A stretch of DNA of 64,000 nucleotides. Origin: Macrostomum lignano (taxonomy: Eukaryota). A program made the translations under genes and the position numbers. Shown one piece after another: positions 83 to 52,073 of the stretch; position 1 is the stretch's first letter, and each line of letters starts with the position of its first letter. The stretch is from positions 1 to 64,000 of the forward strand of contig NIVC01002305.1 of the NCBI GenBank assembly GCA_002269645.1, read 5' to 3'. The notes under the pieces were generated by a model. It saw only the letters and a program-made list of their open reading frames with translations. It had not been told where the DNA came from and ran no database searches.

Positions 83-4607
<4,525 letters not shown>

Positions 4608-7061: not shown

Positions 7062-10000
7062 TTAACTAATTACAAAGCTGGTATTGCCCAAAATTTCCTC
7101 ATCCTCAGACTGGCAGTCGTCGCAGATGCCGCGTATGTCAGCGCCGTCGGTTCCAACGTGGCCGCATCGTTCCGGCATCATCAGTTTGAGCAGGGGACGA
7201 TTGCCGCTGCCAGTGCCCCGCTTGCCGAACGCTCCTGTGTAGGGATACTGAGGGAATTTGAGATGGGGCGGGATGCAGCTGCGAGTATTCATGTAGCTAT
7301 TCTCGATGACTTGGGGATAGATATTAAACTGGGAGGATCTGTGGGGCTGTCCCAGCAACTGAAGATCTGGGAGGCTGGCCCAGCAACTGAGGATCTGGGA
7401 GGCTGGCCCAGCAACTGAGGATCTGGGAGGCTGGCCCAGCAACTGAAGATCTGGGAGGCTGGCCCAGCAACTGAGGATCTGGGAGGCTGTCCCAGCAACT
7501 GAAGATCTGGGAGGCTGGCCCAGCAACTGAGGATCTGGGAGGCTGGCCCAGCAACTGAGGATCTGGGAGGCTGGCCCAGCAGCTGAGGATCTGGGAGGCT
7601 GGCCCAGCAGCTGAGGATCTGGGAGGCTGGCCCGGCAACTGAGGATCTGGGAGGCTGGCCCAGCAGCTGAGGATCTGGGAGGCTGGCCCAGCAACTGAGG
7701 ATCTGTGGGGCTGTCCCAGCAACTGAAGATCTGGGAGGCTGGCCCAGCTACTGATCTGGGAGGCTGGCCCAGCAACTAAGGATCTGGGAGGCTGGCTCAG
7801 CAACTGAGGATCTGGGAGGCTGGCGGTGGTGGCCCAGAGCTGCGAAGATGGTAACAGTTGAAATGCAAGAGCAATAAGATGCATGATGCACTAATAGCAT
7901 ATTGTGCAGAACATCTACATGCATACAACACAGAAATATATAAATGCAGTCACGCTAGTACTTTCACACTACTATATGCATAAATATGAAAGTATATAGT
8001 GCATCTAAATGCATGCATTAGTTACAGGGGGCAAATAGGAACTATCTGCTAAAAGCTTTAGTTTAAAAAACCTTAATTCCAAAGAGTAGTGCCATACACA
8101 ACATGGAGATAAAAACAAGACCAAATACAGAAATACATTCAAGAATGTACCTGTGATATTGTGAAGCAGAAAAACTTGGTAGTTTAAAAAATCAGTCCAA
8201 AGTTTAGAAAGGTATATAAATACGAGCTATTCAATTATAGCAAGAAAAACCGGTAATAGACTGCTTCGTTTTAACTCCGACTTGGAGTACAGGAGGTCCT
8301 TTGAACCTGCGCGTGACAAGCAAATGTAAGATAGACAATAAATCATGGCTTACATATGGCATTGGCGTTATGGGAAATTGCGAACGACGGAAGTATTATC
8401 ATATTGATAATTCAAAATCTAGGAATTAGGAGAGAATTTTTTGCATAGTGGATTCTACTAGTGGCTTAGGAGAGATTCTATTGGCGATTTAGGGGAGATT
8501 CTATCAGCGATTTAGGGGATTCTGTTGGCGATTTAGAGGAGGTTCTATCAGCGATTTAGGGGATTCTGTTGGCGATTTAGGGGAGATTCTGTTGGCGGTT
8601 TAGGGGAGATTTTATTGGCGGTTTAGGGGAGATTTTATTGGCGGTTTAGGGGAGATTTTATTGGCGATTGAGGGGAGATTCTATTGGCGGTTTAGGGGAG
8701 ATCCTATTGGCGATTTAGGGGAGATTCTATTGGCGGTTTAGGGGAGATTCTATTGGCGATTTAGGGGATATCCTATTGGCGATTTAGGGGAGATTCTATT
8801 GGCGGTTTAGGGGAGATTCTACGGGAGAAGATACACGCAGTATACACGCGGACAAGCCGTAGGTAAAACAATCAGGCTCAACTCACATTCAAAGAATTAT
8901 TGCTTCTCTTTAACTCAGAGAACGAGTCGCGCTGTGACTTTCGACACACGGTTCTAACAAAGATGCCAAATACTTGCAATAGATTTTTGCCGATACAGAA
9001 GTCGCACAATACGCAGGCTAGCACTAGAAGCCAGCTAGTAATTAACAATATAGCGTTCAGCGCTTGCAACAATCTAATTGGCCAATTACGCGAATTGCTT
9101 TGATGGTCGCCGTCGCCGCTAGTAGGCTGAGATTGCGACACCCAGGACAGCACCAGTAGCAATAGGCCTAGGCAGAGCAGGCCAAGGTTTAATAGAGAGT
9201 ACAGGCGATACAGGTGCAACTGCGGGCAGGTATGAAACAATAAGCGAAGGATACTACTAAGAGTAGCAATCGTTGAAAACGTTAGTAATAGCATTTTAAA
9301 ATTAAAAATGGTTACTTACCAAGCGCTGCAACGATGTCTTTGAATACCAAAGAGCGAAAATACTGGAGATTATCATCTGCAATTTCAAGCAATTATTCAA
9401 ATTAATCAATATTACAATATAATAGAAAATTCTGGAAACGGAAAAAATTGACAGGCAACATTACTAACGTTTATAGCTTTACACTATACTGCAGCAGACA
9501 ATTCAGTATTTTTTTTATTTTATACAGACAACCTACACCGACACACTTGAAATCTACATCGGCACATCTCAAACCTACACCGACACATCTCAAACCTACA
9601 CCGACACACTTGAAATCTACATCGGCACATCTCAAACCTACACCGACATATCTCGAACCTACACCGACACATCTCAAATCTACACTGACACATCTCAAAT
9701 CTACACTGACACATCTCAAACCTACACCGACACATCTCAAACCTACAGACACATCTCAAACCTACAGACACATCTCAAACCTACACCGACACATCCCAAG
9801 CTTACACTGACACATCTCAAACCTAAACCGACACATCTCGAACCTACACCGACACACTTGAAATCTACATCGGCACATCTCAAACCTACAGACACATCCC
9901 AAGCTTACACTGACACATCTCAAACCTACACCGACACATCTCGAACCTACACCGACACACTTGAAATCTACATCGGCACATCTCAAACCTACAGACACAT

Positions 10001-11188
10001 CTCAAACCTACACTGACACATCTCAAACCTACAGACACATCTCAAACCTACACTGACACATCTCAAACCTACACTGACACATCTCAAACCTACAGACACA
10101 TCTCAAACCTACACTGACACATCTCAAACCTACACTGACACATCTCAAACCTACACTGACACATCTCAAACCTACACTGACACATCTCAAACCTACACTG
10201 ACACATCTCAAACCTACAGACACATCTCAAACCTACACTGACACATCTCAAACCTACACTGACACATCTCAAACCTACACTGACACATCTCAAACCTACA
10301 GACACATCTCAAACCTACACCGACACATCTCAAACCTACACTGACACATCTCAAACCTACACTGACACATCTCAAACCTACACTGACACATCTCAAACCT
10401 ACACTGACACATCTCAAACCTACACTGACACATCTCAAACCTACAGACACATCTCAAACCTACAGACACATCTCAAACCTACACTGACACATCTCAAACC
10501 TACAGACACATCTCAAACCTACAGACACATTTCAAACCTACACCGACACTGTCACGGACATACCTACAATCCACAGGTAGGATACCCACAAGCCTACAAA
10601 AGCCAGCACTTCCCCGCGCCAACGACTCACCGATATTGAGCACCAGAGAGGAAAGCCAAACCCCGCAGTGACATCAAACGGTTGAGCCTGTTCAGTCTCT
10701 TTAAACATCGAGCTGGTGCTAAACGCGGTGGAAGAAGCGTTATTACGATCGCTAGCCCTATTAGCGCAAGATCTATATAGGGCATCCGATAGGCCAATCA
10801 CGCAGCCAACTAAGCCCAGCACTAGCTGAGCCCAGCCCAGCAGCAATGGTACGCGCGAATTAGTTCTAGCGCTAACCACCTCTAATAGACTGTCGGCGTC
10901 TCCGTCTCGACCGCTTCTATTACTACTTCTGGCGTTAATAGTAGTAGCATTAGCATTACTAGCATTATTACTAATCGGGGTAGCAGTATTATCTAATTGA
11001 ACTGACGGCCTGACAGCGGTTGTAGGCGCAGACGAAAACGCTGCATTACTATTGCTATGATTACTATTAGTAATATTATTATTAGCTATCCGATTTGAGG
11101 CAACCGCAGGAATGGCAACAATGGAATCGTCAGAAACAATTTCAGGTTCGCTCCGTGTGTGATAGCCGGCGACTTGACTAGGCATCAT
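7062..11188 (-). CDS. Four-transmembrane MS4A/CD20-like protein; 3' exon structure uncertain
   Basis: Exons 11188-10631, 9376-9320, 9219-8887 (all phase 0, GT-AG) give four hydrophobic segments (LLLGWAQLVLGLVGCVIGL; GFGFPLWCSISMIISSIFALW; LYSLLNLGLLCLGLLLLVLSW; LNAILLITSWLLVLACVLC). The next exon is either 8418-8368 (ILNYQYDNTSVVRNFP*) or 7328-7062; both are in phase. Confidence 0.6.
7329..7822. repeat. 28-bp minisatellite (GGGAGGCTGGCCCAGCAACTGAGGATCT)
   Basis: Visible. Confidence 0.95.
8478..8822. repeat. 23-bp minisatellite (GGGGAGATTCTATTGGCGATTTA)
   Basis: Visible. Confidence 0.92.
9528..10545. repeat. 21/19-bp minisatellite (ACACATCTCAAACCTACA[CT]G), intronic
   Basis: Visible. Confidence 0.95.
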
Positions 11189-11427: not shown

Positions 11428-12196
11428 AGATTCTCAATCACAGGTAAGAGATTACCAATCACAGGTAAGAGATTCTCAATCACAGGTAAAAGATTTCCAA
11501 TCACAGGCAAGAGATTTCCAATCACAGGTAAGAGATTACCAATCACAGGTAAGAGATTACCAATCACAGGTAAGAGATTCTCAATCACAGGTGAGAGATT
11601 CCCAATCAGAAGTAGGAGATTCCCAATCAAAGGTAAGAGATTCCCAATCACAGGTGAGAGATTTACAATCACAGGTGAGAGATTCCTAATCACAGGTAAG
11701 ATATTACCAATGACAGGTAAGAGGTAAGAAAACCCAAATCTCAGGTGGGAGAACCCCAATCTCAGGTGTGAGAACCCCAATCTCAGGTGAGAGAACCCCA
11801 ATCCCAGGTGAGAGAACCCCAATCCCAGGTGAGAGAACCCCAATCCTAGGTGAGAGAACCCCAATCCCAGGTGAGAGAACCCCAATCTCAGGTGAGAGAA
11901 CCTCAATCTCAGGCGAGAGAACCCCAATCTGAGGTAAGAGAACCCCAATCCCAGGTGAGAGAAACCCAATCTGAGGTGAGAGAACCCCAATCCCAGGTGT
12001 GAGAACCCCAATCCCAGGTGTGAGAACCCCAATCCCAGGTGTGAGAACCCCAATCCCAGGTATGAGAACCCCAATCCCAGGTGTGAGAACCCCAATCCCA
12101 GGTGTGAGAACCCCAATCCCAGGTGTGAGAACCCCAATCCCAGATGTGAGAACCCCAATTTCAGGTGAGAGAACCCCAATCCCAGGTGAGAGAACC
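11428..12196. repeat. Two adjacent related 21-bp minisatellites (AATCACAGGTAAGAGATTACC then GAGAACCCCAATCCCAGGTGA)
   Basis: Visible; switch near 11722. Confidence 0.92.
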
Positions 12197-13839: not shown

Positions 13840-17779
<3,940 letters not shown>

Positions 17780-19195: not shown

Positions 19196-21149
19196 TCAAT
19201 CTTTCTTCCGTCGTTTGCCGAGTAAAGTCTTCGCCAACTGTTGCCCATCAGTTGCGCTGGTTGAGCAGCGTTTCCGGTTCGGCGATGAAGAGGTTGCAGC
19301 AGCAGCCTCAGTTTCAGCACCGCCCTCGACAACAGCAGACTTAGCAGCCAATTTCTGCTCTAAAGAAGCAATTCTAGTTTTCAACTGGTTGATAGTCTGC
19401 CTACTAGAACGTTCATGAGAGGCCAAATTTAATCTCAACTGTTTAACTGCGGCAGAATTTGAGCACACAGTCGCTTTTAAACTAAGAATCTCGCCAAGCA
19501 GTCGTTGAACGCACTGACGATCGTCATTGGCGGCCGCCGCAGCGTCCGGGCCAGCTGTGGCCGAGTTTGAACCAGCGACCGCGCCAGGTGCCGCGGTGGT
19601 GGCGGAGGCGGCCGCGGCGGCAGCTAATCGTGACAATTGTCGCTGATCACCAGCTGCGGCCATCAGCGACAGCAACGATGAGGAAGAATGCGAATGCGAG
19701 CAGGCAGGCTGGGCAGCTGATGCGGATCCAACTGCCGCATAGACTGGCAGCGAGTGCTGAGAAGCTGCAGCCGCTGCCGCAGCTGCGTCAATTTTAACCA
19801 GCGGTTCAATCTGCTCTTCAAAGTGTTCCATAGCCATGCTAGACAGATCGCGCAATTCGTGCAATAATTCGTGCGCTCTAGGCGGCTCTACAGTGGCTCG
19901 AACTGTGCGCAATATTCGAAATAATTCGTCCAATACTCGGCCCGGTATGAAGCAGCAGCGGCCAAATTGCATGTGCTTTACGTATGTCATGCCGAGCAGG
20001 GACACCTGTGCGATGCCAATTTAAACAGCCATTTTTAATTGCGCCGTTTACCCCAATCTCCTTTGATGGGTGCCGGTGTGAATCCCGCCTCTTCTCCAGT
20101 TTCATGTGTGTGTTCCGATTTTTCCCTGTTCCCTGTGTAGGTTCTGCTTTTTCCCTTGTTCCCTGTGTAGGTTCCGCTTTTCACCTGTTCCCTGTGTAGG
20201 TTCCGCTTTCCCCCTGTTCCCTGTGTGGGTTCTGCTTTTCCCCCTGTTCCCTGTGTAGGTTCCGATTTTCCCCCTGTTCCCTGTGTAGGTTCCGCTTTCC
20301 CCCTGTTCCCTGTGTGGGTTCTGCTTTTCCCCCTGTTCCCTGTGTAGGTTCCGCTTTTTACCCTGTTCCCTGTGTAGGTTCCGATTTTCCCCCTGTTCCC
20401 TGTGTGGGTTCTGCTTTTCCCCAGTTCCCTGTGTGGGTTTCGCTTCTTTCCCCTGTTCCCTGTGTAGGTTCCGCTTTTTCCCCCTGTTCCCTGTGTAGGT
20501 TCCGCTTTTTACCCTGTTCCCTGTGTAGGTTCCGATTTTCCCCCTGTTCCCTGTGTAGGTTCCGCTTTTCACCCAGTTCCCTGTGTAGGTTCCGCTTTTC
20601 ACCCTGTTCCCTGTGTAGGTTCCGCTTTCCCCCTGTTCCCTGTGTGGGTTCTGCTTTCCCCCCTGTTCCCTGTGTAGGTTCCGCTTTTCACCCTGTTCCC
20701 TGTGTAGGTTCCGATTTTCCCCAGTTCCCTGTGTGGGTTTCGCTTCTTTCTCCATTCTTTCGGACAATCCTATAATAAGAATATTAAACTGAACTTACCC
20801 GCGTGTCAACAGCTGACAGAATTTCGCTATGCCTACTAAACGGATGCTGCTTCCTTTCCGACTCGCGCCTAGGCAGCTTGGCTTTAACAAATCGCTGACT
20901 ATCTTGCAAAGTCCGTTCGAGTTTATAGAAACCGCGATTCAAACGACGCTCGCACAGCTGATTAGCCTGACGAGATACTGGCCGCAGCTGACTAATAGTG
21001 GCATAGCTTAGGTAGCTGAAAATCTTGTCTAGCACCAGGTCTGGCAATTCAAACAGACCCATCATTCTATTGCCGCTTGAGTCTGCTGCTTCTAATAATA
21101 AACTACTGCTGTCAGCATTGCTGTTGCAGTTGCTTGAGCGCGACTGCAT
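19196..21149 (-). CDS. FBXO28: F-box only protein 28
   Basis: Exons 21149-20799 and 20005-19196. F-box (LFELPDLVLDKIFSYLSY), then KLPRRESERKQHP, CCFIPGRVLDE and RAHELLHELRDLSSMAMEHFEE as in FBXO28; Ala-rich insert and coiled-coil tail. Confidence 0.92.
20120..20752. repeat. 29-30-bp minisatellite (CTGTGTAGGTTCCGCTTTTCCCCCTGTTCC), FBXO28 intron
   Basis: Visible. Confidence 0.95.
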
Positions 21150-36844: not shown

Positions 36845-39800
36845 ATGTCTAGAATTTCTTCCACTTACGGAAAGCAAGCGAATGACAGATCAGTTAAGTC
36901 TGCTTCCAAGATGTATGGAGGTAAGAAAAATACAAATATGCTGGTTACCGCGTTTGCTGCCCATTTACTACAACATTTAGATTAGATTTTGGATCATTGA
37001 TTAGTGGGATGCATCGAAGCTATAGAGTAAAAGTATATTTATTTGGAGCTGCTGTCTCCAGTTTTTAGTCTCAGTTGTGTTTGATAATAATAATGAGTAA
37101 ATTTAATTTCCCTTTGAAAGTTAAACAGTGTACAGTGAAAGTTTTTAAGTGAGCTTTAAAAATTGTTAATTATTTTATTTTTGTGTAGTAAAAATGAATT
37201 TTCCATTAATATCAAGTTTTTTATGTGATTTTCTCATAATTTTTTTACTGAACAAAAACATTTCTTTTGAATTTTATACTTTTTGCTGTGTTAAATTCCA
37301 GTTGAACTCCCTAGAAAACTGCAAAAAGGTGCAGAAGCAACAAAATATTTAGCGCAGAATGTTTAGCCCATGATTTTTCTATTTTTGTTATTTTAGGAAA
37401 CTACTTGACTGACAGTGGAAAATCTTTGACTCTCTCTGGCGAGCAACAGCTGAGAGGCTCCCAACAATTGACTAAGTCTGGAAAAAGGTATAAATGAATG
37501 TATTTCTTTGGTCTAATTCTAAGAATCTAGTTCTTTATTTCAGAATAACCATGTTAAATTCCGCATTTGATTTTCAATTTTAGCACAAAATCTTCATTCG
37601 CCGATTCGATTCGAACCAGCACTGGCGCCCTTGAACAAGAGTATATCAAGTCACTCCAGCAACAAGTCTATCTGCTGGAATTGGAAAACAATCATCTATA
37701 TCCTTCTTAATTGAAATTTCTATATTTTCTTTCATTTATAATTTATCAGACATTTTCATTTTAATGCTGCAAGAAAGCCTAAGATATTAAATAGCTAGGT
37801 TTATTAATTTTTGCTTCCTTGACCATTAACTTTTTTAGTAATCCTTTGTGTCAACAAATTTAATAAAATTGATTTAACCATTTCATCCATACATGTATTA
37901 AGAAACTCTGACTCTAACCAATAATCTAAATGAATAAGAAGTCAAAACTATAAATGTATATCGTTTATTTTATTTTCCCTTTGTTTCCAAGAAACAAATC
38001 AATCGGTTAAGATTTTCCTTGACGCAGCATTCTCCATAAAATTTGCCCCGACTGATACGCGGTCACAGGCTGTGAAAGCCACTGAGCTTCACCCGACGAT
38101 GGCTGCCGAGGCGGAGAAAATGTTGCGCGAATTGAAAGCTCTGCAAGCCAAGGTCGACGCGCTTCAATTGGAGAATTTTCGAAAAGAAGGCGCCGCTGAA
38201 GTCCTTCACCAAAAGGTGCGTAAATAAAAACTAAAGGCGCCCGACACCGTAAACAAATGTGGGTATTAGTCATTGGTTCGTGAGCGTTCCCCAAATTAGG
38301 ATGAAAGTGCTTGGTAAATATAAATTGTTACACCACTGTTAAAATGGTGTCTCTTCCGGATGATCCAAAATTAAACGTAGTTATTAAACGTAAGCCGCCA
38401 AAATCCCAACCAACTCTCAGGTGAACGGACTCACCCAGAAGCTGGCCCAGTACGAGGCCAGCCACAGCGAGGAGCGGGAACGATTCGACAAGGACAGCGC
38501 CGAAGCCCGCCGGGAGAGGGACATGTACCAGAGAGACGTGGGCCGACTGCAGATGCGACTCGGCGAGCTGCAAGAAGACTTCGATCACAAGCTGTCCGAT
38601 CTGAAAGCGTCCGAGACTAAAGTGGCCACATTAAGAGGTGAGCAACTTTATATCCATTTTCGCCCATCTGCTTGTACAATCTTGACCAAAGTCATACTGA
38701 TTGATACGTGACCCGCATGGGGCAGAGCAGTTCAGCGCCTTGTCAAGCGACTGTCCCCCAGTATGAGTGCCTGCGGCGCCAAGTATGAGTGCCTGCGGCG
38801 CCAAGTATGAGTGCCTGCGGCGCCAAGATGAGTGCCTGCGGCGCCAAGATGAGTGCCTGCGGCGCCAAGATGAGTGCCTGCGGCGCCAAGTATGAGTGCC
38901 TTCAGCGCCTAAAAGAGTACCAGCGGCGCCAAATGAGCGCTGACAACACACCGATGCTGGAAATAATGTACATGTAAATGTATAATTCTTGGCTTGTCCC
39001 CCACCACCATAAAATCCAAGGCGACATCCCTGCTGGCCACATTACTATCGCAGATTACCCGCAGCCTAGTGCATGACTCATACTTCTATTTTTATTCTCC
39101 ATTGCGATGCAATTTGCTCAGATTCCGAAAGCAACTCAAAGGCTCAAAGTACCATCAATTTTATCAGCGGTAATGTTGACTATTTATTCATTTATTTATT
39201 GCCACACATTTTTGTTTATCCTGTTGTAAGCACGTGAAAAAATGTTTTGCTATACATTTTTTGTTGTTGTTGTATCTAACAATTACGACTCTACCTATAG
39301 TATACAGAAATCCCACGAAATAGACGTGTAGTTGTTATTTCCTATTTGGTGAAGGTAAAATGATCCAGAAAAATTTATTATTTGTTTAAACTATTTGTGT
39401 TAATTATCTCTATATCTATACACAATGACTTACATTGGTGTCTATCATTTGTTATACTGCACTTAAACCTCTTATTTGCCTTTCGTAGCTTTTATCCTTT
39501 TAAATGTATACCCGAAATTTATAGTGTTTTTTGGAACTACTGCTATTATTGTAGTAGGCTTCTATTGTATGTTACTGTATTTTTGTTTGTAAACGGGGTG
39601 CTAGCTTAGCGCTGAACACCTCTGCCTATAGGATCTCCGAATCCTGGTGGGTGAAACTAGCAGGGTACCAACTTCTGGGGCCTTCCAGGTGGCCCTTTAT
39701 GATCACCAGCCTTCCAGGGGGTCGATTTACAATTGCTGTCAGCACAAGTCAGATCACCCAGCACAATGGCAGCTCTAAGCAGCTAGGAGTGCAATCATCT

Positions 39801-41914
39801 TCCTGAAGTATGAGAAGCTCAGCCAAAAACGCAAAATCATCAGGCAGGCCGCCCCCAGGACACACTAGCACCCTCCGGGTACACCCACGATCTTAATGAG
39901 ACCGGCCGTACTGAACATCATGTACACTTCGGACTGCTATGGATGTTTAATTTATGTAATAACTTGCAACGTTTGTTTTTACTATAGCTGACGTGGAATA
40001 GAGACCCAGAAACAGCCATGTTTTACTGTTAACAATTACCAGTTATCTTATTCAGTAGCCATATATCATTCTGAGCTGACCGTTCAACCATCTCACTCAA
40101 GGCCAGCTCGAGGCGGCTCTGGACAAACTGGCTGCGGCGGACTCGGCACTGACCGAGGAGCGAGCTCAAACTGCTCGGCTTGAGGCTCGAGTCCGAGTAC
40201 TCGAAGTCGAACTAGCTAGCACCAATACGAAAGGTTTGGAACGAAATATTCGCGAACTACGAGACGAGAATTTGGCTTTAAAAGAACGACTCCGCCGGGA
40301 GCAGAGTAAAGCTCACGAAGAGACGCTTCTGCGCAGCAAGACGTTTGAAGAGACGTCGGCCCTGGTGAAGCAGAATGCCGCTTTGGAGCAGAAAGTGGTG
40401 GAGCTGGAGCGCCAGATTGAGGCGGAAAGGGACAAGTCGCATCAGTGGGCGGGACACGCGAGTGTCGAATCCGATGAGCTGGTGCGGCTCAGAGAGCGAG
40501 AAAAGACGCTTGAATATCAGGTTTGTAGCCTGTCTGAGTTCTGATTGGACGAAAAGCTCAAGTATGTAATTGGGGGAAGAGTTTGGGGTGGGTGGAGCAA
40601 GCTGATTGGGGGAAGGAGTTTGGGGTGAGTGGAGCCAGCTGATTGGGGGAAGGAGTTTGGGGTGGGTGGAGCCAGCTGATTGGGGGAAGGAGTTTGGGGT
40701 GGGTGGAGCCAGCTGATTGGGGGAAGGAGTTTGGGGTGGGTGGAGCCAGCTGATTGGGGGAAGGAGTTTGGGGTGGGTGGAGCCAGCTGATTGGGGAGGA
40801 GGTTCAGGGTGGTGGGTGAGAGCCCGCTCTAATTGAGGGAAAGGGCTTGGGGTGGGTTTCAGCCAACTAAGGATAATACTAAAGCTGTTGACTTGGCTTT
40901 ATCTTTCACATTTTTGCATTTACAACAACAAATTTTTGCGTTAAGCTTACTAAAAGTAGTGCGTACTGTAAAGCGCATCGTTAGTATAACCTTCAAACGA
41001 TATTTACTATTCAGGTGTCCAGCGGTGTAGAAGAGGTGGCCAAGCTGCGTCTAAAAGTGCAACAGCTCACCCAGCAACTCAACGAAGCTTCCGAGACCAA
41101 GGACGCCGGCACCATCGACTTGACCGTCGCTCGGCGTCGCCTAGAAGAGGCCGAGAACTCTCAGGCCAGCTTGTCGGACCAGCTGAGCAGATTGCAGCGG
41201 GACAAAGCCGAACTGGTTGCCCACGTTGACAGCCTTCAACAGGAGCTGATGAAGCGGGAGTCTGAGAAGGATGGATTGGCGAGGGCGCTGGATCGGGCGG
41301 AGCTGAGACTCAACGAATTGCAGGGCGAGGTGACTCGGCTGCAGCAGCTACAGGTTAGATAGGGTTTGCTTACCTGTTAGAGTTGGGTTTGCTTACCTGT
41401 TAGATTTGGGTTTTCTTACCTGTTAGATTTGGATTTGCTTACCTGTTAGATAGGGTTTGCTTACCTGTTAGAGAATTTTTATTACACCTGCCCAAATGGG
41501 CAGATGTGCAACCGACAGCTCAGCCGCAGCTATTGCGTGGCGCATCTGAAGGCTGCGTACGGCTGTTCAGTCCAAGGACTGGGAGGGGGGTGCCAAACAC
41601 ACCCTCAGTTACCCTAGCAATGCTGGCACCCATTTTACAGATTGATCTGAATGGTCGAGAATCGAACCCCCGACCTTTCAGCCATAAGTCTGACAACTCG
41701 ATTTAGCTTGACTACCTCATACCTGTTGGGTCAGGTTGGGTCAGTTTCAGGTATGTCAGGTTGTGTTTGCCAAGAGCAACACCACAGCAATCCTCCCACC
41801 TGATATCTGTTCTGTACAACTTTGCAGGCTACCCGCTGGTCGGAGGTGGAGAAAATGGCCGACACGCTTCGCTCTGCCGCCCACTCCAATTCTGTCCTGT
41901 TCGATAGCTATTAG
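36845..41914 (+). CDS. Uncharacterised ~500-aa coiled-coil protein
   Basis: Exons 36845-36920, 37397-37487, 37584-37697, 38059-38215, 38421-38637, 40102-40520, 41015-41353, 41828-41914; all phases concordant; heptad-rich E/K/R/Q/L sequence, e.g. EYIKSLQQQVYLLELENNHLRSQAVKATELHP. Confidence 0.8.
37698..38058 (+). other. U12-type AT-AC intron in the coiled-coil gene
   Basis: Donor ATATCCTTC at 37698, TTCCTTGAC at 38015-38023 (second copy at 37815-37823), AC acceptors at 38051-52 or 38057-58. Splicing restores the frame. Confidence 0.82.
38752..39032. mobile_element. Second copy of the same MITE family carrying an expanded 21-22-bp minisatellite
   Basis: Shares ACACCGAT.CTG.AAAT.ATGTACATGT...AATTCTTGGCTT.GTCCCCC...CCAT.AAATCCA.GGCGAC..CCCTG with 47955-48040; unit ATGAGTGCCTGCGGCGCCAAG(T). 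Confidence 0.6.
40570..40800. repeat. 37-bp G-rich minisatellite, intronic
   Basis: GGGGAAGGAGTTTGGGGTGGGTGGAGCCAGCTGATTG; four G-runs per unit. Confidence 0.92.
41354..41470. repeat. 22-bp minisatellite starting at a splice donor
   Basis: GTTAGATAGGGTTTGCTTACCT, about 5 units; the first unit begins with the donor GT. Confidence 0.85.
41476..41716 (-). mobile_element. tRNA-derived SINE, copy 3 (internal deletion)
   Basis: Body nearly identical to 12974-13130; the segment around CAAGGACAC is missing; lies in the last intron of the coiled-coil gene. Confidence 0.72.
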
Positions 41915-43622
41915 CTAATGGATATCTCCTTTGATAATGGAGAACTTTTTCTTAGAAAAAGAAACTATTTTTGCATCGTCTTCCATAAAACAGTTTTACT
42001 GTGCGCAACTCGATAATTAGTGATGGCTAAGAGGAGGATTTAACGCGTCCAAGTTTGAGCATTTTATTGAAGGCCTGCAGAGTTTTTGTCTGGCTTTAAT
42101 ATTAAGTTTTAACTTAAGTAACCAAACGTCTCTACACATTGCGAAGTGTACAGAGAATCAACCGCCATAAACAGTACGAAACCGTGGACCACCAAACCGC
42201 TTTAGCGTGAATGTTTTCAGTAACAGAGGTCAAATATTGGTGCTGCAAAAATCTCCCCCTTCCCATTCTGTCCCAAATGCAAAGACAAAAACGAGCATAT
42301 TCCCGTAGTAATTGAAAAATCACACGCTGATCTGTACTCATAACTTCAATGCTCAACATCCTCCTTACACTACACTTGTGTACTTCGAATTTGTAACTTA
42401 ATAGTTCGTTTTTACTCGTGGCAAATTTTAAATTTTACTTTTAGTTAAAACAAAAATGTGTAATTTTTTTGGCACGCACACAAAGTTTTTGCTTTCCGAA
42501 TAAAGGTTGATCCTTGAATGTTTGTGTTTTTCTCAACCATTGTACTATACTTCAGCTCATGGAAATCGAAAGTAGCTTTTTCACAGAAAAGAATCATCCT
42601 GAGATTGGAATGCGTTTGCACCAATCTATCCATTTATTACCTAATTTTGTTAGCTTTCTGTGTTAGCCAATATTCTAATGCTACCAATATTTTTATTACG
42701 AATTACCGTAGCATACAAAATGATTGTTTTTTTTGAGCTGGCTTCAAAAGTTTGTCAATAGATTATTTTTTCTCCCTTGTTAACAATTAGCATATTATTA
42801 TTTAGTGCTTAATGCGGTGTTTCATTTCCAATACAGAGGCTTACGAAACAGATATTTGCTGCACTAAATGTGTCGCGTTTTTGAAATTTATATCTTTCCC
42901 AGAAAAGCATGTGATAAATTTTCTGGGTTATTTTTACTTGATTTTTAATTATAAACTGTGCCTCTTCAAAGTACATGTTGTAGTTTTAGTATAGTATTAT
43001 ATAATGGATGGGACTGGACCTCCTCAAACCACATGTAGTTTTCAGTGCCTTGGTGACATGCACTTTAAAAATCGAGCTTAACCTATTTAACTAACTACTT
43101 CAGCTCTGGTTAAGAAGTTACTTTCTCAAGTTCAAGGTCTTTCAAATCGTATATTCAACAGATTTCTAAATGGAAACGAATTCGGAAAACAACGCGCCCA
43201 AACTTTCGAAACCATCGCCGCCACGTGCTCTGCTTGATAAGCGTTCGCAGTCTCTCTGTGCATTTTTCTCTCCCCCCCCCTGTCTCTCAGCCTCTGTAAC
43301 CATAAGCCTCAAACCTTAACCCTGAGACGAAAGCTTTCACAGTGCACTGGAGGAGACACTCGCTATGCGTGAGAGCATAGACTCTGATAAACAATTAAGA
43401 CTTAGGAAAATTAGCTCTGCGTGTTTCCGTCTTATTCTTCTAAAATTGTCATATTGAAGTATTGAGTTGGCTGGGTGCTCAAGCTTGCTAAACGCCTCTA
43501 TAAAAATTGAAGCAAGAGAGGCGAGGAGTCCGTCTGTCTATATAAGCATACGAAACTACACAGACAAGTTGAACCATAGCCAAATTCAGGATTAAATTCA
43601 TACGCATTATACGCAAATCACC

Positions 43623-44707
43623 ATGAGGATGCCAACAGTCGTTATTTTGGTTGGCATGGCAACTGTCTTTAGCATAGTCGGAGCCATGCAACACCAATTC
43701 GAAGACGGACCAGAGGAGTCGGTGGACGATTTGAGCACAAATATGCTCAGCGACGAGGTTCTTGAAAATGGAGTAGACGATTCCAGCATTGATGAAGTGA
43801 GATTACATATTGTAGCCTAATTATTGAATAAAACACTTCTGACACGCAAGCTCCTCTCAAAGCACCGATCACTTCTGATTCGCAAAGCTCTTCTCAAAGC
43901 ACCGATCACTTCTGATTCGCAAAGCTCTTCTCAAAGCACCGATCACTTCTGATTCACAAGCTCTTCTCAAAGCACCGATCACTTCTGATTCACAAGCTCT
44001 TCTCAAAGCACCGATCACTTCTGATTCGCAAGCTCTTCTCAAAGCACCGATCACTTCTGATTCGCGAAGCTCTTCTCAAAGCACCGATCACTTCTGATTC
44101 GCAAGCTCTTCTCAAAGCACCGATCACTTCTGATTCGCGAAGCTCTTCTCAAAGCACCGATCACTTCTGATTCGCGAAGCTCTTCTCAAAGCACCGATCA
44201 CTTCTGATTCGCAAGCTCCTCTCAAAGCACCGATCACTTCTGATTCGCAAGCTCCTCTCAAAGCACCGATCACTTCTGATTCGCAAGCTCTTCTCAAAGC
44301 ACCGATCACTTCTGATTCGCAAAGCTCCTCTCAAAGCACCGATCACTTCTGATTCGCAAAGCTCCTCTCAAAGCACCGATCACTTTTGACACGCAAGCTC
44401 TTCTCAGAAACACCTCACTTCGGACTTTTGAATTGTCAAAAACCCTAAGATTCTTTCTAAACCTCAAAACCCTCTCCCACACTCGCAGGCGCTCGACCAG
44501 CGTACGAAATCGTCGCCCTGCTTTCGCCAGAGCATCTACAACAGAATCGCCAGCCCAGAGGCGAAGATGGCCTACAGGCGCACCTTCGGCCCGTGCCCGA
44601 CCGCCGCCGCGCGGAATCCGAGCTGCTTTCGAATGCAGCAGTATTTGGGATTTAGTAGATGGGCCGACAAGGCCGCTTATCGCAAAACGCACACGCAGTA
44701 CTGCTAA
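43623..44707 (+). CDS. Secreted 130-aa precursor: signal peptide, acidic propeptide, cationic domain with two Cys-bounded repeats
   Basis: Exon 1 43623-43796 (donor GAA|GTGAGA), exon 2 44489-44707 (acceptor ctcccacactcgcag|), phase 0, open to TAA. Exon 2 = ALDQRTKSSPCFRQSIYNRIASPEAKMAYRRTFGPCPTAAARNPSCFRMQQYLGFSRWADKAAYRKTHTQYC. Confidence 0.75.
43840..44407. repeat. 36-38-bp minisatellite in the intron of the secreted-peptide gene
   Basis: GCTCTTCTCAAAGCACCGATCACTTCTGATTCGCAA. Confidence 0.95.
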
Positions 44708-44997
44708 GCAATTGATTTTTTAAACGTTCAAATGCGCCCTGTTTGGATCCAATTTCTGCGGTAAAAGTTTGACAATTCAGCATTAGACTGTCTTCAGTAC
44801 TCGTAAACACGCTATCAAACAGTTGTCGGGGTTTCGAACTCATTTACCAGACAATATACTGTATATAATACAAGCGTATTCGATACACACTATTCAAAAT
44901 TAATCGTATATATTTACCAAAAAATACACCACGATGGAGGCTAAAAATTGTCATTTTGGTTTTGGTCATCACAAATAAAATCTGACTTTTGGGCCTT

Positions 44998-45178
<181 letters not shown>

Positions 45179-45525
45179 AACCTTGGAGGCCATAATATGC
45201 ATTCGGGTTCCTCATGGCTTTGCAGATGATAAATCAATGTGCGGAATTTGCTTATTTTATTTGGTTGAGCTACGAGTATTGGACAAAAATGATGCAAAAT
45301 GCATGTACTTTTACATGAATGTGTTAGAAGTATATTTTACACATTCTTTTTCGTTGCAGTTGTAAGGTTACATGGTTGAGAAATTTTACATACCATATTT
45401 GCCAGTAATTTTTTGTATAATTTTAATTACCTTTATTTTTACGTATAGATTAAATCTTTCGCCAAAGGAATAATGCATGCAAAGCAATATACTACTCCTG
45501 TTTTTGGAGTCTGCATGTCATGAGG

Positions 45526-46056
45526 TTAGTTGTCTCCGAATTGCTTGTCTGATTCATCAACAATCTGGCACTGGTCTTCCGCAGTATCGGCGGTCGCCTT
45601 GGCAACCATGTCAATTTCGGCAGCCGTGACGCTAGCAGCGTCGCAACATTTCTGTTTTAACACCGCCGATGCGCTTGTTGCAGACTTATGCTTTTGCAGG
45701 CGTTGCTTCTTTTGGAATTTGATTCGTTGCAACTGTTGCTGCTGCTGCTGCTTCAGTAGCCTGTCATTTCGTCGCTGCACAATGCGACTCATGTCGATCA
45801 TCTCGCAGTCTTTCTTCATATTAGCATTGGCAGCCGATTGCGCCTCTTTGCCGCTGACGTCCTTCTCGGCGTCGTTGCTGGAATTTCCGCTGCCGGAATT
45901 GTTTCCCGCCGGGTTCGGGTAGTGCGGAGGCGGCAGGTTCTCGGAGCAGCGGACGCTTTTCCGGTGTCGCGTCGCTAATAGAGTGACCAGCAGGGCTGCA
46001 GACAGCATGGATAGAATGGTCAGCGCGCCTGCTAGGGTTATGATGAGTGGCTCCAT
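45526..46056 (-). CDS. Small single-pass membrane protein with poly-Q/basic cytoplasmic tail (orphan; possibly the last exon of a larger gene)
   Basis: ORF MEPLIITLAGALTILSMLSAALLVTLLATRHRK: hydrophobic helix followed by basic residues; GC-rich coding-like composition; acceptor-like ctctgctatag 11 nt upstream of the ATG. Confidence 0.55.
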   Translation of the reverse strand: MEPLIITLAGALTILSMLSAALLVTLLATRHRKSVRCSENLPPPHYPNPAGNNSGSGNSSNDAEKDVSGKEAQSAANANMKKDCEMIDMSRIVQRRNDRLLKQQQQQQLQRIKFQKKQRLQKHKSATSASAVLKQKCCDAASVTAAEIDMVAKATADTAEDQCQIVDESDKQFGDN

Positions 46057-46160
46057 AAGGACAGCGGCTATAGCAGAGTTGGGTAAAATTGGTTTCAATT
46101 GCCGCCGCTATAGAAATATTATATCTATGTTTTTTATTTGCGTAACGTTTTTGGCCAAAG

Positions 46161-48535: not shown

Positions 48536-52073
<3,538 letters not shown>

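Follow-up and report, generated by a model that had tools for sequence, protein, structure and literature searches.

The window analysed in this study, a stretch of 64,000 nucleotides from the flatworm Macrostomum lignano (contig NIVC01002305.1, forward strand), carries on its plus strand a two-exon gene that encodes a protein of 130 amino acids. The ATG start codon lies at position 43623 and opens a frame of 58 codons that runs to position 43796 (exon 1, 174 nt), where it meets the sequence GTGAGA; exon 2 (44489-44707, 219 nt) follows an acceptor of the form ..CCCTCTCCCACACTCGCAG|G, and its sequence ends in a TAA stop codon at 44705-44707 (plus strand). Joining the segments 43623-43796 and 44489-44707 gives a coding sequence (CDS) of 393 nt, which translates into the 130-aa protein. 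The GT-AG intron between them (43797-44488, plus strand, 692 nt) has the GTGAGA donor, a pyrimidine-rich tract and a CAG acceptor, and both its donor and its acceptor are invariant in all three copies of the gene found in the genome (see below). Inside the intron lies a minisatellite with a 36-nt unit in 16.2 copies (43834-44421, not assigned to a strand; TRF score 999, 95% matches), which occupies almost all of the 692 nt, as had been claimed in an earlier note made from the letters alone (hereafter the sequence-only reading). At least 25 minisatellite arrays of such kind were found across the window.

A pattern scan of the flanking DNA revealed two TATA-like boxes on the plus strand (43499-43545), i.e. 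TATAAAA at 43499 and TATATAA at 43539, which precede the ATG by 78-124 nt. Neither box varies among the three genomic copies, with 16 nt between the boxes absent from the window copy, and the two boxes may form the core promoter of the gene. A pattern scan also located a polyadenylation signal, AATAAA, at 44974-44979 (plus strand), 267 nt past the stop codon and again invariant in three of the three copies, which presumably is the signal used for polyadenylation. The base composition of exon 2 bears a clear coding signal (GC 59.8%, GC3 77%), and the GC content of the 3' UTR is 34%. Two other possibilities at the locus were considered and rejected. A 128-aa ORF on the minus strand over exon 2 (44306-44692) is regarded as a by-product of the GC-rich coding sequence, as GenBank annotates the plus-strand gene alone here; and another acceptor that would keep the frame, at 44448-44449, is conceivable from the sequence, but it is 44489 at which the annotated product is spliced.

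Annotation and copies of the gene

The 130-aa sequence is identical to that of the GenBank entry PAA59031.1, 'hypothetical protein BOX15_Mlig012304g1' of Macrostomum lignano, and the annotated span of BOX15_Mlig012304g1 is 43623-44707 of NIVC01002305.1 (GCA_002269645.1, Mlig_3_7), where the coordinates of the window and those of the record coincide. The two-exon splice model, the reading frame and the 130-aa product that the sequence-only reading had put forward are exactly those of this record. That reading had also called the gene hidden, because a mechanical list of open reading frames gave exon 1 only (as 65 aa running into the intron) together with a 46-aa fragment of exon 2 that starts at an internal ATG; this label has to be withdrawn, as GenBank has listed the gene from the Mlig_3_7 release of 2017 onwards, where it stems from RNA-seq-derived transcripts. 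The GenBank annotation of Mlig_3_7 was built from genome-guided RNA-seq transcripts (StringTie/TACO) and a de novo assembly, with the ORFs called by TransDecoder, and novel models with an RPKM < 0.5 and without overlap with a de novo transcript were dropped (PMC5730564). As this RNA-seq-derived annotation arrives at the same product, the junction 43796/44489 has indirect RNA support. On the other hand, no transcript contig encoding the protein was found in the Logan or ENA collection.

Two more loci carry the gene, L001 (NIVC01001208.1) and L002 (NIVC01002078.1), and both match the window at 94-98% identity along a stretch of >20 kb that takes in the flanks. A tblastn search found no further paralogue within the 64-kb window. 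The presence of three near-identical loci fits the assembly redundancy that has been described for the DV1 line of M. lignano (PMC5730564). Because reads multi-map among loci of this degree of identity, the window copy might be silent even when the family is expressed. The gene spans 859 nt in L001 versus 1085 nt in the window, and the difference of 226 nt would amount to about six repeat units if it is located in the intron minisatellite. The CDSs of these two copies differ at five synonymous and four non-synonymous sites and by an in-frame indel of 3 nt, and the rough dN/dS of ~0.27 is based on nine changes, which are too few for significance; the 3' UTR of ~296 nt shows a single substitution. 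In the protein, the variants that tell the copies apart are His24/Gln, Ser103/Asn, Met107/Ile, Ser114/Asn and a Val indel. Three of the four amino-acid substitutions between genomic copies fall in the second of the two repeats described below, and in L002 a 1-nt deletion frameshifts this repeat, leading to the 152-aa product PAA61034.1. As similarity is no lower in the flanks than in the exons, the comparison of the copies is nearly uninformative about selection.

Organisation of the predicted protein

The protein starts with a signal-peptide-like leader of 21 aa, MRMPTVVILVGMATVFSIVGA (43623-43685, plus strand), which has an arginine (Arg2) in its basic n-region, a hydrophobic core of 17 residues (mean Kyte-Doolittle value 2.3), and V-G-A at positions -3 to -1. 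V-G-A before the cut agrees with the (-3,-1) rule for signal peptidase sites. The signal-peptide call is rule-based, resting on Arg2, the hydrophobic core and V-G-A, and it agrees with the hydrophobic leader proposed in the sequence-only reading. The 42 aa after the leader form an acidic region, the exon 1 share of which (MQHQFEDGPEES...SSIDE; 43686-43796, plus strand) is predicted by AF2 with a pLDDT < 50, and the end of which is formed by the sequence ALDQR (44489-44503, plus strand), with Arg63 at 44501-44503. This region contains 14 D/E and one K/R, with a charge of -13.4 and a pI of 4.05. The remaining 67 aa (TKSSPC...THTQYC; 44504-44704, plus strand) make up a basic domain with 12 K/R, 2 D/E (one of them Glu), 4 Cys and 10 aromatic residues, a charge of +9.4 and a pI of 10.1. 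The residue counts given earlier for both parts, 14 D/E in an acidic propeptide and 12 K/R versus 2 D/E in the C-terminal 67 aa, were reproduced, and the segregation of acidic and basic charges along the chain is highly significant (Fisher p = 2e-5).

Cleavage between the two parts, after ..DQR (Arg63), might take place, although this is a guess from the sequence. The context of Arg63 reads ..EALDQR|TK, with L, E and I at P4, P6 and P8; since none of these residues is basic, Arg63 falls outside the monobasic convertase rule, and the boundary has no KR, RR or other dibasic site. The dibasic sites of the protein are RR88 and RK123 only, both of which lie within the conserved motif AYR[RK]T.

The four cysteines of the basic domain follow the spacings C-x24-C, C-x9-C and C-x25-C, and the domain is made of an internal duplication. 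Repeat 1 (Cys69-x24-Cys94, CFRQSIYNRIASPEAKMAYRRTFGPC; 44519-44596, plus strand) and repeat 2 (Cys104-x25-Cys130, CFRMQQYLGFSRWADKAAYRKTHTQYC; 44624-44704, plus strand) align ungapped over 26 columns with a BLOSUM62 score of 40, for which shuffled sequences give p = 0.0009, or p = 0.0016 when the cysteines are held fixed. Common to both repeats are CFR, a Tyr, a Lys and AYR[RK]T, so that the duplication sharing CFR and AYR[RK]T that had been seen by eye withstands the shuffle test at p ~0.001. AF2 consistently predicts a helix-turn-helix for each repeat, at low overall confidence: the pLDDT is 51 for the full protein and 61.5 on average for the basic peptide alone, in which five helices are predicted, the block means for repeat 1, at positions 11-30 of the mature peptide, being 84 and 77 and the confidence for repeat 2 being low (~50). 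Foldseek found no match to the AF2 models in the PDB below E = 2.4.

Search for relatives

The full protein, each of its repeats and the paralogue were compared with Pfam, with nothing above threshold. Three sub-threshold Pfam matches, to SAS-5 implico, YqiJ_N and DUF6245, were judged to be due to chance. The match to the SAS-5 implico domain (PF21518) covered 20 residues and reached 13.8 bits, where the cut-off is 27, and the PDB entry 4ynh was matched at E = 0.26; as SAS-5 is a centriole protein found inside nematode cells, we treated this match as chance. In the sequence search of the PDB, SAS-5 was the only match of the full protein, and the mature peptide had none at E <= 10. For distant homologues, a word-indexed search of 5.8 billion proteins returned the M. 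lignano cluster only, and an exhaustive phmmer search of 1.84 billion representative proteins, with the peptide encoded by exon 2 as the query, returned its own cluster only, in libraries that may lack other Macrostomum proteomes. Judged by these searches, the known relatives so far would be the three near-identical M. lignano copies only, and the sequence family appears undescribed, having no relatives in the libraries searched. The sequence-only reading had recognised no named family either, and Pfam, the PDB and phmmer give none.

UniProt, however, gives the name 'Matrix Gla protein' (MGP) to A0A1I8J8R4, a copy with 96% identity, while it lists the window protein, which has the identical layout, as 'Uncharacterized protein'. 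The name would imply that the gene encodes a remote protostome relative of osteocalcin and MGP that lacks carboxylated Glu residues. For this comparison, we prepared one alignment of 18 MGPs and another of 16 osteocalcins, both families carrying Pfam PF25890, and confirmed the human osteocalcin sequence from PDB entries. There is indeed some resemblance, confined to short motifs. The A-Y-x-R-[FY] motif is present, with MAYRRTF and AAYRKTH here versus QEAYRRFYG in osteocalcin and AAYNRYF in MGP, and AYRRxxGP and NPxC-x7-GF are motifs in common. With its filters off, the osteocalcin HMM gave 4.1 bits, a score equalled by 0.7% of shuffles, and hhalign against the osteocalcin alignment gave E = 0.004 over 11 columns. 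BLASTP against human osteocalcin placed NPSC-x7-GF...AYRK on NPDC-x7-GF..AYRR at E = 6e-4 for a single pair, and such single-pair osteocalcin E-values are optimistic, because the comparison was picked once the motif had been seen.

Against this resemblance, the hhalign probability was 2.2% for MGP and 8.3% for osteocalcin, with 11-12 columns around AYRR aligned; the MGP HMM with its filters off gave -0.3 to +0.4 bits and so did not outscore shuffles; PF25890 was unmatched even at E <= 10; and in an unbiased search the PDB osteocalcin chains were unmatched at E <= 10 as well. The features of the sequence point in the same direction. Three Glu residues, E60, E67 and E71, never vary among the aligned MGPs, whereas almost none of the 30 invariant columns of the MGP alignment are kept here, and the mature part contains a single Glu. 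The motif ExxxExC is not present, the residues preceding Cys being QRTKSSPC and AAARNPSC, and in place of the C-x5-C of MGP and osteocalcin the spacings are C-x24-C, C-x9-C and C-x25-C. A literature search for a vitamin-K-dependent carboxylase in flatworms gave nothing relevant. We rejected an identity with Matrix Gla protein, for which the profiles fail and the carboxylatable Glu cluster, ExxxExC, C-x5-C, a docking sequence for the carboxylase and the phosphoserine triad SxE are all missing. As the defining features of MGP and osteocalcin are absent, the name 'Matrix Gla protein' is unsupported, and as a candidate for membership in an already described family it fails both the profile and the feature tests.

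Interpretation

What can be predicted firmly is a protein of the secretory pathway whose N-terminal half is acidic and disordered, and whose C-terminal half is basic, helical and disulfide-containing and is made of a duplicated module. The best overall explanation of the locus, which we adopt tentatively and at somewhat short of an even chance, is that of a transcribed M. lignano gene for a small secreted protein, with a defence-type cationic effector slightly favoured as its role. According to this explanation, the 21-aa leader would route the protein into the ER and would be removed after Ala21, and the basic 67-aa domain would fold as two tandem helix-turn-helix hairpins with one disulfide each. 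The disulfides could pair Cys69 with Cys94 and Cys104 with Cys130, or equally well in a nested arrangement with a C94-x9-C104 loop, the choice being a guess. The acidic segment (-13) would offset the +9 domain during packing into gland-cell secretory granules, and perhaps would be removed after packing. The basic domain, which is rich in Arg and aromatic residues and poorly hydrophobic, might then bind a polyanionic or protein target outside the cell; such binding is favoured over membrane lysis because of the low amphipathicity, the low aliphatic content and the Boman index of the domain.

Precursors of host-defence peptides and toxins classically pair an anionic half with a cationic half of balancing charge. 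The setting of the M. lignano protein may be either host defence or a reproductive or other glandular secretion, and our analysis slightly favours a defence-type effector, because its balanced acidic and basic halves fit the cationic-effector layout. The identifiers Mlig012304 and Mlig002367 are absent from the supplements of five M. lignano papers, and the gene identifiers had no matches in the full-text literature.

Among the alternatives, a reproductive or tail-gland secretion survives best. The protein would then be a prostate seminal-fluid protein, or a product of cement, shell or adhesive glands, with a target in the mating partner or in the secreted material. Secretion signals are enriched among the tail-region genes of Macrostomum (54 observed vs 32.9 expected), and secreted proteins without detectable homologues are likewise enriched among its tail-region and prostate genes (PMC7336406); the gene studied here is of the secreted type and has no homologues. 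Its identifiers do not occur in the supplements mentioned above. The case for this alternative is one of prior frequencies, and we consider it unlikely, albeit of appreciable weight. It is rather unlikely, too, that the gene is the founder of an undescribed, Macrostomum-restricted family of secreted effectors with single-disulfide tandem hairpins and charge-neutralised precursors that would serve defence or the manipulation of mating partners.

A classical membrane-lytic antimicrobial or toxin precursor, cut after Arg63 to release a cationic twin-loop peptide that permeabilises microbial or prey membranes, would share with the precursors of alpha-defensins, amphibian peptides and venoms the order of signal, anionic pro-region and cationic Cys peptide. 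It would also suit a gene without relatives whose copies differ unusually often in their coding sequence, as is common among immune effectors. The physical properties of the basic peptide, however, speak against lysis. Its maximum 11-residue hydrophobic moment is 0.65 versus a shuffle mean of 0.62, with 36% of shuffles reaching at least that value, and the predicted helices have a muH of 0.11-0.38 and a negative mean hydrophobicity, although these amphipathicity measures are heuristic and not decisive for Cys-stabilised peptides. In addition, the peptide contains one Leu, two Ile and no Val, with a GRAVY of -0.80 and a Boman index of 2.6, and Arg63, without a basic residue at P4, P6 or P8 and without KR or RR at the boundary, does not fit the monobasic convertase rule as the site of the cut that the lytic peptide would need. 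Taken together, we regard this alternative as distinctly unlikely.

Even less probable, and very unlikely in our view, is the precursor of a neuropeptide or hormone, in which convertases would cut at RR88 and RK123 to yield disulfide-linked chains or shorter peptides. The sole dibasic sites do sit in the conserved AYR[RK]T of both repeats, and acidic spacers are common in prohormones; but there is no amidation Gly and no Gly-basic site, and RR88 and RK123 lie within predicted helices and Cys-bounded loops. Orthologues were found in no other animal, whereas neuropeptide families are usually kept at least phylum-wide, and we know of no neuropeptide family with the C-x24/25-C spacing.

That the locus is a decaying or non-functional young gene, transcribed into a protein without a selected function, is highly improbable. 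The restriction to a single species, the frameshift by a 1-nt deletion in repeat 2 of one of the three copies, and flanks conserved like the exons, with little sign of constraint, would all agree with it; yet two of the three copies keep the full frame, the sole indel between those two is in-frame, the rough dN/dS is ~0.27 (from nine changes only), the GC3 of exon 2 looks strongly like that of coding sequence, and the protein has an organised layout with a conserved, duplicated four-Cys module. Finally, kinship with osteocalcin and MGP is extremely improbable, since the few shared motifs and optimistic E-values are outweighed by the profile and feature results given above, and UniProt itself leaves the window copy as 'Uncharacterized protein'.

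Our preferred reading, a small secreted protein with a defence-type effector slightly favoured, places the locus among ordinary lineage-restricted secreted-protein genes, as one of the many orphan secreted proteins of an annotated genome; its gene model is already public, and small lineage-restricted secreted pre-pro-proteins are a common kind. What has been gained is that the gene model is now checked against an RNA-derived annotation, and that the database name 'Matrix Gla protein' on a near-identical copy is found to be unsupported. Should the twin-hairpin peptide prove bioactive, it would add a new scaffold, from a flatworm that lives freely and is amenable to transgenesis and RNAi, and it would exemplify a secreted effector that is young and restricted to its lineage.

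Comparison with known systems

A parallel within the genus exists with the rapidly evolving secreted proteins of the tail and prostate of Macrostomum (PMC7336406), with which the protein shares its small size, its secreted type and its lack of homologues outside the species. With osteocalcin and MGP it has in common that it is small, secreted and predicted to be helical, that NPxC-x7-GF and AYRR-x2-GP occur as in the C-terminal helices of osteocalcin, and that AAYxR occurs as in MGP; unlike this family, which is known from vertebrates only, the M. lignano protein has its module duplicated.

Among helical hairpins held by disulfides, the Cs-alpha/alpha scorpion kappa-toxins, the plant alpha-hairpinins and the twin-CX9C proteins have two disulfides per hairpin, in the pattern C-x3-C...C-x3-C or C-x9-C...C-x9-C. 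The M. lignano repeats differ from them in having one Cys at each end (C-x24/25-C) and in giving no Foldseek match in the PDB; on the other hand, each repeat is similarly predicted to be a helix-turn-helix, and its end cysteines could staple the hairpin.

Some cationic host-defence peptides are made from precursors with anionic pro-regions, as in the pro-pieces of alpha-defensins, the amphibian precursors of the dermaseptin type and the periculin of Hydra. Compared with these precursors, the M. lignano protein is not known to be similar in sequence or Cys pattern, lacks a KR or RR site at the boundary, and has a basic domain that is non-amphipathic and poor in aliphatic residues. It nevertheless resembles them in the succession of a signal, an anionic segment and a cationic Cys-containing C-terminal peptide, and in charges that are near balance (-13/+9). 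Furthermore, periculin and arminin of Hydra are taxonomically restricted, and the M. lignano gene is like them in this respect as well.

Coding divergence among the genomic copies

When the peptide gene BOX15_Mlig012304g1 was compared with its copy on NIVC01001208.1 (L001), nine substitutions were found in the 393 nt of coding sequence, versus a single one in the ~296-nt 3' UTR. The stretch of interest in this comparison is 44558-44657: five of the nine coding substitutions, three of them non-synonymous, are packed into ~35 nt (44622-44656) where repeat 2, the second Cys-bounded segment of the basic C-terminal domain, begins. Given the small number of changes, diversifying selection and gene conversion are both only possible causes of this clustering. 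In the other copy, L002 (NIVC01002078.1), a 1-nt deletion (GCGCGG to GCGC-G) at ~10765, equivalent to ~44615 in the window, shifts the frame of repeat 2 and leads to the annotated 152-aa protein PAA61034.1; either L002 is decaying or the indel is an assembly error.

The UniProt label "Matrix Gla protein"

One of the three near-identical proteins, A0A1I8J8R4, the product of a paralogue of the gene at 43623-44707, is named "Matrix Gla protein" in UniProt, a name that the other two do not carry. This identity was unsupported by profile tests, and the label looks like an automatic over-call from the AYRR and NPxC..GF motifs.

Flanks and neighbouring genes

Upstream of the gene, L001 and L002 both have 16 nt between the two TATA-like boxes, CTCTCTAAGCCAACTT, that are missing from the window copy (at 43531-43532). 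Downstream, an (ATCT)45 microsatellite (45001-45179) begins ~20 nt past the AATAAA signal of the peptide gene; the alignment with the other copies breaks and shifts there, which suggests a length difference among them. Beyond it, two annotated genes lie on the minus strand, one (45526-46107) for a protein of 193 aa that has a single hydrophobic, TM-like segment and a stretch rich in Gln, the other (48536-52073) for a 365-aa FGE-sulfatase-domain protein, and this 3' gene order, a small 193/194-aa gene followed by the FGE-sulfatase gene, is identical in all three loci. Within the 10-kb flanks, the upstream neighbours are not alike across the three loci; those annotated in the window, both on the plus strand, are a protein of 499 aa that matches KASH_CCD faintly (36845-41914) and a DHHC palmitoyltransferase (up to 34387). 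No functional link to the peptide gene is evident among its four annotated neighbours in the window.

Tandem repeats

The intron carries a 36-nt minisatellite (43834-44421 in the window; 10208-10573 in L001/L002), whose copy number appears to vary among the genomic copies: the window copy has 16 units, and L001 would have ~10, judging from a gene span 226 nt shorter. Tandem arrays are unusually dense throughout the window, where TRF detected at least 25 mini- or microsatellite arrays scoring 300 or more, among them a 2.1-kb (AGAT)n array; examples lie at 2402-3221, 9530-10549, 11435-12196, 14008-16164, 20105-20745 and 50069-51023. Such a density fits the reported figure of 15% tandem repeats in the M. 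lignano genome.
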